From sequence record OP752703.1: a DNA stretch of 64,000 nucleotides, one strand, 5' to 3'. The translations under genes and the position numbers were made by a program. The notes beneath the pieces are model-generated. The model was not told the origin of the DNA, did not search any database, and saw only the letters and a list, made by a program, of their open reading frames with translations. The number at the start of each line of letters is the position of its first letter. Within the stretch, counting starts at the first letter, position 1. Below are positions 3,180 through 40,516 of this stretch, piece after piece.

Positions 3180-3469
3180 AACCCCAACTACCTTCACTGT
3201 ATTCATTCATATCCAACATCAGTAGAGAATACGGTGATGGTCGAGAGCTAATGGTATCGCTGTCCGTCTATCTAAGACAGGACTACACGAAAAAGATCAC
3301 CATGTTCAGTCCACGTAATCGAATCGAGTTCAAATACTTCATGTACTTCTATGATATGGGAGGCGTGAAAGAAGACACCGATTGTGATTTCGATGGTTTT
3401 TACATTGACTATGAGATTTCCGCACGAAGGACCACTAAGAGTCTGAACATGCAACGATTTGGACATTGA
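3176..3469 (+). CDS. small protein, KxxhxxY[DE]F tandem family (3)
   Basis: KYFMYFYDM; ATGA overlap. Confidence 0.75.
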   Translation: MKPQLPSLYSFISNISREYGDGRELMVSLSVYLRQDYTKKITMFSPRNRIEFKYFMYFYDMGGVKEDTDCDFDGFYIDYEISARRTTKSLNMQRFGH

Positions 3470-3472
3470 GCT

Positions 3473-3739
3473 ATGAATAAGGGAAATACTGTAAGAACTT
3501 GGAGTGTTGGAGTAAAGATCGCCCACATATTCCATAGGAATTCGGATTTAGATTTTACTCACATGCCCCGATTCCGTTCATATAAAATAGAAATGGATTC
3601 TTATACTACAGAACCGGAAATCTACTATAGGCATATCGTTCATGGCTTAAAACAATATCATCGTAATTACGATTTCGATTCATACATGGAACCGGAATAT
3701 GCAAATTATGAAGAGTATGCAGAGGTAGCATATCCATGA
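3473..3739 (+). CDS. small protein, KxxhxxY[DE]F tandem family (4)
   Basis: KQYHRNYDF. Confidence 0.75.
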   Translation: MNKGNTVRTWSVGVKIAHIFHRNSDLDFTHMPRFRSYKIEMDSYTTEPEIYYRHIVHGLKQYHRNYDFDSYMEPEYANYEEYAEVAYP

Positions 3740-9888: not shown

Positions 9889-10097
9889 ACAAGTATTACA
9901 TGAAAGACCTCAGTCCACTCAATCCACACCCCTATCACTGCATCGGATTCAGTGACGACCACCTGTCACATCTATACTTTAATTCATCTATTGCCGATGC
10001 GAAATTCCATCTGCTACACTACGACTTCAACAATATCCGTTCTTGGGAGCAAACCACTAATGGATATGAAGTAACTATGTGTGTATACCACCTATGA
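9885..10097 (+). CDS. small protein, KxxhxxY[DE]F tandem family (31)
   Basis: DAKFHLLHYDFNNI. Confidence 0.8.
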   Translation: MNKYYMKDLSPLNPHPYHCIGFSDDHLSHLYFNSSIADAKFHLLHYDFNNIRSWEQTTNGYEVTMCVYHL

Positions 10098-10327
10098 ACA
10101 TTTATTACATTTCAAATATAAATCCAGAAGAAGGATACATCGGTAAACTATCAGCCGACTCCCCTTTCTATGCCCTAGGTTTCACCCCTAGAGATATGCG
10201 TGTCTATAACGCCCATAGCAGAGTACACACAAAGCTATATCTAAATCGCTACGAATTCACAGAAGCATCAGACTGGAAAACCACAATCAACGGCAGAGAC
10301 GAACCCATGGTGATGTATTACGTATGA
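10094..10327 (+). CDS. small protein, KxxhxxY[DE]F tandem family (32)
   Basis: KLYLNRYEF; start moved to ATGA overlap. Confidence 0.75.
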   Translation: MNIYYISNINPEEGYIGKLSADSPFYALGFTPRDMRVYNAHSRVHTKLYLNRYEFTEASDWKTTINGRDEPMVMYYV

Positions 10328-29996: not shown

Positions 29997-30072
29997 TGGC
30001 GCGCCCGGAGGGATTCGAACCCCCAACCAACAAGGTAGAAGCTTGTTGCTCTATCCATTGAGCTACGGACGC
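29997..30072 (-). tRNA. tRNA-Arg(TCT)
   Basis: Cloverleaf, loop CT-TCT-AC, TTCGAAT, CCA. Confidence 0.95.
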
Positions 30073-33452: not shown

Positions 33453-33528
33453 TGGTGGAGCCTATCGGGATCGAACCGATTACCTTCTGCGTGCAAGGCA
33501 GACGCTCTCCCAAGTGAGCTAAGGCCCC
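33453..33528 (-). tRNA. tRNA-Ala(TGC)
   Basis: G3:U70, loop CT-TGC-AC, CCA. Confidence 0.95.
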
Positions 33529-33536
33529 ATGTTAAA

Positions 33537-33616
33537 TGGACCGGGCGACAGGGGTCGAACCTGCATTTTCATCCATTACCTGAGTCAACGTTCGTAGCGT
33601 TGCTGGTTACACCCGG
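33537..33616 (-). tRNA. non-canonical tRNA-like RNA, D-arm absent, ACG anticodon-like loop
   Basis: 7-bp acceptor + CCA, T-arm TTCGACC, hairpin CAACG-CTACGAA-CGTTG. Confidence 0.6.
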
Positions 33617-33622
33617 AGTATA

Positions 33623-34003
33623 TTACAAAAACTTGTTAAAATCAACTACATCTCTAGGATAAATTTCACCATCTTTAGGATGGGAAGCTCTCTCTACTAG
33701 GAACTTGCGATCTTCCGTGGAGATATTCTCAACAGGAATAGTCACAGTTCGTTTCAGCAAACCGTAAAAGAACGGAGTCTTGATTAAAACGTTGCGTAGC
33801 TTGTACGGCTTATTGCTTCTATTCATGTAATTCTCTAGAAGCTCTACGACTACAACCTTCTTATTAGGAAGTCGCCATGTTGTGGTAACCAAGGCTTTGT
33901 GGTCGAAATAATCGCCACCTGTCCATCTTGTATCACGATCACATGTGGTAGCTTGGTATTTCAGGTAGTCTAGAAAATTTAAACCTTCATCTGATTCAGA
34001 CAT
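33623..34003 (-). CDS. hypothetical protein
   Basis: 126 aa, AAGGA RBS. Confidence 0.65.
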   Translation of the reverse strand: MSESDEGLNFLDYLKYQATTCDRDTRWTGGDYFDHKALVTTTWRLPNKKVVVVELLENYMNRSNKPYKLRNVLIKTPFFYGLLKRTVTIPVENISTEDRKFLVERASHPKDGEIYPRDVVDFNKFL

Positions 34004-40382: not shown

Positions 40383-40516
40383 AGCCTGTGACAGGACTCG
40401 AACCTGCGACCTTTCCTAACAACATCCAGCGATCAACCCGAATGTTAACAACGCGACGTGTACTTAGCCCGTGTTATAAAGTTTATGGAGCGCTCTCCCA
40501 ACTGAGCTACATAGGC
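40383..40516 (-). ncRNA. tRNA-like RNA with ~60-nt expansion of the anticodon domain
   Basis: Intact acceptor, D-arm GCTC-AGTTGGGA-GAGC and T-arm GCAGG-TTCGAGT-CCTGT; no encoded CCA. Confidence 0.7.

Follow-up and report, generated by a model that had tools for sequence, protein, structure and literature searches.

A probable tRNA-Arg(ACG) with a rewired core in the tRNA array of Stenotrophomonas phage RAS14

The tRNA array of the Stenotrophomonas jumbo phage RAS14 contains an element of 80 bases that has an arginine anticodon and lacks a D hairpin. Is this a functional tRNA, and how might its core be constructed? The DNA analyzed, termed here the window, comprises the final 64 kb of the RAS14 genome, and is the same as that of phage CM1 over the stretch compared. 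The element occupies positions 33616..33537 of the window on the minus strand, so that element position p lies at window coordinate 33617-p.

The acceptor stem is formed by positions 1-7 (CCGGGUG; 33610..33616) pairing with 33541-33547, giving 7 bp of which six are Watson-Crick and one is U-G. This is followed by a U8-A9 connector (33608..33609). The anticodon arm at positions 15-31 (33586..33602) has a stem CAACG/CGUUG of 5 bp and a loop CUACGAA of 7 nt, with the ACG anticodon at 33593-33595. The T arm, positions 53-69 (33548..33564), comprises the stem GCAGG/CCUGU and the loop UUCGACC, and the 3' end (33537..33547) consists of the acceptor 3' strand, a discriminator U at 33540 and an encoded CCA at 33537-33539. 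Thus the 7-bp acceptor with U73-CCA, the normal T arm and the perfect 5-bp hairpin with the loop CU-ACG-AA described in the initial annotation are all present on the minus strand. The acceptor stem and the hairpin are separated by 7 nt (UAACCAG), and 21 nt lie between the hairpin and the T stem.

A search of Rfam with the element matched no family, even at E<=10, and ARAGORN missed it in standard, relaxed (-ps), intron and two mitochondrial modes. The single call made nearby in a mitochondrial mode is spurious, overlapping upstream sequence. As a single sequence the element folds no more stably than its shuffles (z = -0.48). A covariance model constructed from the alignment of its homologs scores it at 93.9 bits with E = 3e-23, the sole such match in the window; canonical tRNAs reach no more than 37 bits under the same model. 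Scanning for promoters and terminators around the element gave matches at the level of chance. One sigma-70-like match (TTGATT, a 17-nt spacer and TATACT; 33617-33645, minus strand) ends one base before the start of the element, and the abutment of its -10-like hexamer on the 5' end is probably coincidental. The small ORFs flanking the element match no Pfam family, and the only matches of one are to PHROG families of unknown function; nothing here points to a dedicated tRNA enzyme.

The CM1 genome (319.5 kb, 43.9% GC) has 29 tRNAs called by ARAGORN, all of them within the window on the minus strand, and all 20 amino acids are covered. It had been suggested that the ACG isoacceptor is otherwise missing, and this holds for the whole genome: the phage's only other arginine tRNA is a canonical tRNA-Arg(UCU) (29997..30072, minus strand), and there is no canonical decoder of CGN codons. 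Among the arginine codons of 196 long ORFs of CM1, 47.6% are CGU, 22.0% CGC and 10.9% CGA (in sum 80.5%), with CGG contributing 0.7%. The nearest gene downstream, on the same strand and at a distance of 8 nt, is tRNA-Ala(UGC) (33453..33528, minus strand), identified by both ARAGORN and Rfam. The order Ile, element, Ala, Val, His, Ser, Arg is common to the window and to phage XacN1, whose syntenic cluster contains a single canonical Arg-UCU together with the element.

Several other features of the array may be recorded. A full-length GOLLD RNA lies within the tRNA cluster at 45528-45953 (minus strand; 217.8 bits, model positions 1-416). A tRNA-like gene at 40383-40516 (minus strand) scores 39 bits with the Rfam tRNA model, and has a normal acceptor, D arm and T arm with an insertion of ~70 nt in its anticodon arm; ARAGORN is silent at this gene, which could be an intron-containing or disrupted tRNA. 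Suppressor-type tRNAs with the anticodons UUA and CUA are found at 46793-46867 and 50693-50768 (both minus strand), yet TAA is the commonest stop codon in the 196 long ORFs (146 TAA, 44 TGA and 6 TAG). Two CUA suppressors are present in XacN1 (PMC5852040).

The element is not confined to this phage. There are about 85 distinct homologs in the tRNA clusters of cultured and metagenomic phages, in which the stems covary throughout. They come from phages of Stenotrophomonas, Xanthomonas, Pseudomonas, Rhizobium, Mesorhizobium and Streptomyces and from huge phages; within clusters of tRNAs they go unannotated in no fewer than 12 GenBank phages and in some 70 contigs of viral or metagenomic origin. 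When GenBank phages were searched with blastn, homologs lacking annotation came up in XacN1 and Xoo-sp13 (Xanthomonas), DLP_6 (Stenotrophomonas), RHph_I1_18 (Rhizobium) and Cp1R7A-A1 (Mesorhizobium). Later searches added members in the Pseudomonas phages ventosus, UAVern, Bitten and vB_PF_Y1-MI, in the Streptomyces phage Daubenski and in "huge phage" assemblies of 642-735 kb, each with no annotation at the site of the element. In RHph_I1_18 (L004, ~595-675) the locus tags skip from EVB91_036 to EVB91_034 exactly at the element; a feature may have been predicted at this site and then dropped. A search of plasmids for the element gave no match.

Copies are also found in three alphaproteobacterial genomes, a Hoeflea MAG (L079), Rhizobium rosettiformans (L080) and Pseudaminobacter soli (L081), within arrays of 10-20 tRNAs. 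The copy in P. soli is identical to that on an IMG/VR viral contig (L009), and the three are therefore probably prophages or phage-like elements. Tandem pairs of arginine members with the same fold, separated by 1-6 nt, occur in a number of loci. One (L017:3326-3405 and 3407-3496, the same in L030) combines GCG with UCG, and others combine UCU with ACG (L014:3508-3587 and 3594-3673) or UCU with UCG (L143:9943-10022 and 10029-10107). The different anticodons within pairs suggest duplication followed by a shift of anticodon within the fold.

The way in which the family was collected bears upon how its conservation should be read. Motif scans covered viral, metagenome and genome collections, and the anticodon was left unspecified in every scan that yielded members; one variable-gap scan that fixed part of the anticodon contributed none, its matches being chance hits in coding sequence. 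Most members derive from motif-anchored scans, which in part dictated that the anchoring motifs would be invariant: most of the patterns required U33 and A37-A38, and several required part of the T-loop (GGTTC). The positions reported as variable were left free in the first blastn matches and in the later relaxed scans. Sequences and loci share ancestry, and counts consequently exceed the number of independent events.

We aligned 51 distinct sequences using MAFFT. Within the helices 96.5% of cells are paired, compared with 66% in shuffled alignments, and the covariation measures were reached by none of 500 shuffles; controls in which the partner strand was slid were ~35% paired. The acceptor stem is 97.5% paired with compensatory changes in all seven pairs, the T stem is 98% paired with compensatory changes in four of its five pairs, and the anticodon stem exhibits such changes in five out of five. 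U8-A9 is invariant in 51 of 51 sequences, and the canonical tRNA-Arg genes of these phages have the same bases at positions 8 and 9. U54, U55, C56 and A58 of the partly scan-fixed T-loop are also invariant. Some members look decayed, one having just four of seven acceptor pairs (L092) and another having C33 and an altered T-loop (L127:12773-12854). The homologs lie in tRNA clusters and their stems covary, and the conclusion that emerges from these comparisons is that the element is not a chance look-alike.

What has taken the place of the D arm? The element had been described as D-armless, with a linker of 7 nt. There is indeed no D hairpin, and the segment is 7 nt long, but part of it belongs to a helix closing around the anticodon arm, its bases pairing and covarying with bases that lie 3' to that arm. 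The 5' strand of this extension helix is at positions 10-14 (ACCAG; 33603..33607) and the 3' strand at positions 37-39 (GGU; 33578..33580). The 11:38 pair is formed in 51 of 51 sequences (43 CG, 7 UA and 1 GC), as is 12:37 (42 CG, 8 GC and 1 AU), such that G37 and G38 covary with C12 and C11. The 10:39 pair is mostly AU, U39 being invariant; it is formed in 84% of sequences and unpaired in the remaining 16%. The 14:33 pair may be CG, GC, AU or UA, and is formed in 73% and unpaired in 27%. A pairing 13:34 was rejected, being formed in 24%, and position 13 is left unpaired. On the 3' side of the junction (positions 32-36, ACUCA; 33581..33585), A32 is invariant and bulged, C33 pairs with G14, and there follows a bulge of 3 nt at positions 34-36 that varies in sequence and is 4-9 nt long in divergent members. 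The covariation was seen once the scan freed the bases next to U8-A9 and those before the AAYGG motif, and RNAalifold predicts the same extension helix independently. In our model the extension helix would stack directly on the anticodon stem, giving an uninterrupted column of about nine pairs from which A32 and positions 34-36 bulge; its length is close to that of a normal D stem and anticodon stem combined. Two other pairings had been proposed. A UCA/UGA mini-stem can be drawn in the element, but two of its three pairs are formed in only 31-39% of the 51 homologs, and an alternative register with AAU is not conserved in the homologs.

The long region that follows the hairpin is no mere spacer. 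Positions 40-47 (AAUGGAUG; 33570..33577) carry the motif AAUGGAU, and are followed by a variable-loop-like segment of 5 nt at positions 48-52 (AAAAU; 33565..33569). Canonical tRNA-Arg genes of these phages, the tRNA-Arg(UCU) of the window among them, have the D arm GCUC-AAUGGAUA-GAGC, whose loop motif AAUGGAU recurs unchanged in the segment following the helix. From this match we deduce that the segment corresponds to the D-loop of a tRNA-Arg, relocated to the 3' side of the anticodon arm. The equivalents that we propose are A40 for A14, A41 for R15, G43 and G44 for G18 and G19, and A45 for A20; U52 is the proposed equivalent of Y48. In the model, the 5' strand of the extension helix replaces the canonical 3' strand of the D stem together with position 26, and its 3' strand replaces the canonical 5' strand. 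The canonical order is D-stem 5' strand, D-loop, D-stem 3' strand and anticodon arm, whereas in the element it is D-stem 3' strand, anticodon arm, D-stem 5' strand and D-loop. The simplest description is that the D/anticodon domain looks circularly permuted. From the known L-shape of tRNA, the ends of the permuted segment should be adjacent in the folded molecule. In the DLP_6 subgroup there is an extra covarying hairpin just upstream of the variable-loop-like segment, resembling a variable arm.

Candidate equivalents of U8, A14, R15, G18, G19 and Y48 are present and conserved in the permuted order along the backbone, the contacts between them being predicted. The bases at positions 41 and 52, corresponding to 15:48, are A:U in 55 and G:C in 30 of 85 members and are never mixed, and both states occur in both amino acid identities of the family. 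The GG motif and a canonical T-loop are retained in essentially all members. In two divergent members (L104:9315-9395 and L127:12773-12854) the second G of the GG motif and T-loop position 56 change together, an observation that is anecdotal. The three-dimensional mapping is a model, drawn from the identity of the motif, the length of the stack and a handful of tertiary covariations, which perhaps represent few independent events.

We then have a family that can be examined for its anticodons. An anticodon-agnostic structural finder applied to all the DNA collected gave a strict set of 85 distinct elements. The arginine anticodons are ACG (34), UCU (9), UCG (9), CCU (2) and GCG (1), the isoleucine anticodons are UAU (23) and GAU (7), and there is nothing else; among the canonical tRNAs of the same loci, Arg and Ile make up 14% of 723. 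The covariance model adds looser members that include one CCG, so that all six arginine anticodons are seen. The isoleucine members include a large clade with the same permuted architecture (L155-L227, e.g., L155, L166, L170, L198 and L224), with further examples in L092:5584-5676, L135:33-115 and L143:9678-9757. The clade has the D-loop-like motif AGYGGU/G, G:C at the 15:48-like positions, and always A as discriminator. Two long ARAGORN calls of tRNA-Ile(tat), in L014:3679-3771 and L113:2351-2441 (both minus strand), were set aside as another fold; these are tRNA-Ile(UAU) genes of 91-93 nt, ordinary cloverleaves with a normal D arm and a long, type-II-like variable arm.

A20, C35 and G or U36 form the identity set of bacterial tRNA-Arg in E. 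coli and T. thermophilus, A20 being the element of the D-loop recognized by ArgRS; IleRS requires A as the discriminator, and both enzymes recognize elements of the core or D-loop in addition to the anticodon. The base equivalent to position 20, which follows GG and occupies the place in the motif that A20 has in the canonical tRNA-Arg of these phages, is A in 55 of 55 arginine members and in none of the 30 isoleucine members, all of which have U or G (Fisher 1e-23); a looser arginine member (L017:478-558) has C. The discriminator is A in 30 of 30 isoleucine members, and is U, G, A or C in the arginine members, like that of nearby canonical arginine tRNAs. In all arginine members C35 is invariant and position 36 is G or U; U33, A37 and A38 are invariant too, mostly as fixed by the scans. 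These switches of identity are present on both 15:48-like backgrounds, and are therefore not the effect of one clade. The initial annotation had made conservation of the hairpin loop in homologs decisive. Homologs do preserve the loop, and the anticodons that differ are those of other arginine tRNAs, or of isoleucine in the related clade. We take the anticodon loop of the element to be identical to that of bacterial tRNA-Arg(ACG), and the features of a TadA substrate are present (U33-A34-C35-G36 in the 7-nt loop CUACGAA on a perfect 5-bp stem). Wolf and colleagues reportedly found in 2002 that the anticodon stem-loop alone suffices for TadA.

We turn next to the genomic surroundings of the members. 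A canonical Arg-ACG accompanies a noncanonical ACG member in 1 of 39 loci, compared with 6 of 18 loci where the noncanonical anticodon is another (p = 0.003, the loci being related). In ventosus, for instance, a noncanonical UCU is found 80 nt from a canonical ACG. Canonical and noncanonical UCU occur together in five loci (L092, L132, L140, L143 and L153). The encoding of CCA follows the neighboring tRNAs, being found in 40 of 41 members where at least 70% of the neighboring canonical tRNAs encode it, and in 0 of 11 where no more than 30% do so. The base at -1 is U in 50 of 59 members.

The element is very probably a functional elongator tRNA-Arg(ACG), read as ICG, with a non-canonical, rewired core. 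This agrees with the earlier reading as a functional if odd tRNA: it is a real and conserved tRNA-shaped RNA with an arginine ACG loop that would fill a gap in the tRNA set of the phage. It would be transcribed along with the minus-strand tRNA array upstream of tRNA-Ala, and matured as its neighbors, RNase P cleaving the 5' end and the 3' end being trimmed back to the encoded CCA. The acceptor and T stems should stack as in any tRNA. With no D hairpin, the strand that follows U8-A9 would pair just 3' to the anticodon arm, creating a single helix in which about nine pairs stack, with bulges, and the D-loop AAUGGAU emerging from this helix is predicted to dock on the T-loop, with G18/G19-like contacts, an interaction of U8 with the A14-like base and a 15:48-like pair. 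Host ArgRS would then read C35, G36 and the A20-equivalent base, and host TadA would deaminate A34 via the unchanged anticodon stem-loop. The deaminated tRNA could read CGU, CGC and CGA, corresponding to ~80% of the arginine codons of the phage. Counting against this reading are the ordinary folding energy of the single sequence, the decayed look of some members, the incomplete pairing at 10:39 and 14:33, the changing length of the junction and the five loci with both kinds of UCU.

We also favor, with rather less assurance, a broader proposal. Functional elongator tRNAs with a circularly permuted D/anticodon domain, in which the strands of the D stem flank the anticodon arm and the D-loop has moved 3' to it, would exist as a natural class, and the element would be the first of them to be recognized. 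The class would be used for arginine (six anticodons) and isoleucine (UAU and GAU) by phages of at least Proteobacteria and Actinobacteria, and be systematically absent from annotations. More speculatively, the fold may persist by escaping enzymes of the host or of competitors that recognize the normal D arm or elbow of tRNA-Arg and tRNA-Ile, while satisfying ArgRS or IleRS, EF-Tu and the ribosome.

Other explanations must be weighed against these. The element could be a functional tRNA-Arg whose core does not resemble a permuted canonical one, being instead a flexible boomerang with a long anticodon helix like the D-armless mitochondrial tRNAs, in which AAUGGAU would serve solely as a recognition site for ArgRS. 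The secondary structure is a three-way junction like theirs, the junction bulges are variable, and the tertiary support is thin, comprising two single co-variations of the GG and T-loop and few independent events at the 15:48-like positions. However, the T-loop and GG are essentially invariant, unlike those of mitochondrial D-armless tRNAs; U8 and the A14-like and 15:48-like bases are kept, the latter exclusively as A:U or G:C in 85 sequences; and the length of the helical stack is close to the canonical one. We therefore regard such a structure as unlikely. We consider it unlikely, too, that the element is a mimic that never enters the ribosome, soaking up a host factor such as an anticodon nuclease, TadA, ArgRS or a tRNA-sensing defense. 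In its favor, the core is abnormal, standard tRNA models reject the element, and the anticodon loop is presumably the same as that of bacterial tRNA-Arg(ACG); in addition, phage tRNAs are known to counter tRNA-targeting defenses (PMC10264068, PMC11464382, PMC11555353). The Arg(ICG) decoy suggested earlier fares poorly as a decoy for TadA in particular, since the arginine variants with G34, U34 or C34 lack A34 and would not be substrates. A mimic of any single target leaves the six arginine and two isoleucine anticodons unexplained, together with the switching of the A20-like base and discriminator with the anticodon and the near mutual exclusion with canonical Arg-ACG. Moreover, the family retains what charging and EF-Tu need: a 12-bp acceptor/T unit, a canonical T-loop and the local convention for CCA.

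It might finally be asked if the element is a decaying pseudogene or a chance tRNA-like sequence, given that the gene finders are silent and the folding energy of the single sequence is unremarkable. This has virtually no prospect of being correct. Every helix is preserved by compensatory changes in unrelated phages of Proteobacteria and Actinobacteria, the functional positions are invariant and the model E-value is 3e-23; the covariation and conservation refute it.

A full-text search of the literature found no description of this fold, and an earlier description is possible since most subscription journals lay outside its coverage. We know of no tRNA of such topology that works with a bacterial ribosome, EF-Tu or ArgRS. 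A 2020 review of non-canonical tRNAs contains no phage case and no re-ordered core (PMC7609411), and the paper on XacN1 reports 26 canonical tRNAs, two suppressors and one pseudogene per repeat (PMC5852040). A 2023 survey describes a candidate RNA that sometimes overlaps ARAGORN calls of tRNA-Arg (PMC10690425), and this might be the family of the element. We would class the element as a novel structural variant among tRNAs.

If it is charged and used, the backbone order of the four-arm tRNA would be dispensable for bacterial ArgRS and IleRS, EF-Tu, RNase P, TadA and the ribosome. What counts would then be solely how the core elements are arranged in space, and the family would constitute a natural experiment in tRNA topology; the permuted fold might also provide a new scaffold for tRNA engineering. 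Inventories of phage tRNAs would be incomplete, biasing analyses of codon usage against tRNA content. The inventories of CM1/RAS14 and XacN1 would be missing a decoder that, using the codon usage of CM1, serves ~80% of arginine codons in that phage. The family further offers a testable handle on why only Arg and Ile identities adopted the fold, and allows a test of whether tRNA-targeting defenses drive structural innovation in phage tRNAs.

How does the element compare with known systems? It shares with a canonical bacterial or phage tRNA-Arg(ACG) (RF00005) the 7-bp acceptor, the 5-bp T stem with a UUCRA T-loop, the 5-bp anticodon stem with the loop C-U-ACG-A-A, AAUGGAU with A20, the variable segment of 5 nt, the encoded CCA, the length of 80 nt and the location within a tRNA array. 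It differs in having no D hairpin at positions 10-25, the strands of the D stem instead flanking the anticodon arm with the D-loop 3' to it. Like the D-armless mitochondrial tRNAs (metazoan mt-tRNA-Ser(AGY) and those of nematodes; PMC7609411), it has a three-way junction with a short connector in place of the D hairpin. Those tRNAs, however, have lost the D-loop and usually the contacts of the T-loop, and work on mitoribosomes, whereas the family described here is encoded by phages of bacteria and has retained the D-loop motif in full, together with the core bases and a canonical T-loop. The anticodon helix of mt-tRNA-Ser(AGY), too, is extended in published models.

Allo-tRNAs (8/4 and 9/3), tRNA-Sec and tRNA-Pyl (PMC5389517, PMC7609411) are likewise natural, conserved non-cloverleafs from metagenome mining that standard tools miss or mis-score. 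In these the lengths of the helices vary and the order of the four arms is kept, whereas the order of the D/anticodon backbone is changed in the element. The permuted and split tRNA genes of Cyanidioschyzon and Nanoarchaeum resemble it in the non-canonical order of their segments, but there the rearrangement is at the acceptor end and is repaired at the RNA level to give a normal tRNA. A permuted gene of the algal or archaeal type, with the 3' half placed ahead of the 5' half and the acceptor ends joined via a processed circular intermediate, was rejected for the element, in which the acceptor strands are in normal order and flanking; its permutation is internal, and presumably permanent. Lastly, tRNA-like mimics such as the tRNA-like domain of tmRNA, viral 3' TLS and mascRNA also join an acceptor and T arm to a D region that is reduced or altered. 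They have no constrained anticodon, in contrast to the element, where the anticodon varies in step with the "20" base and the discriminator, in the manner expected from the identity rules of aminoacylation.
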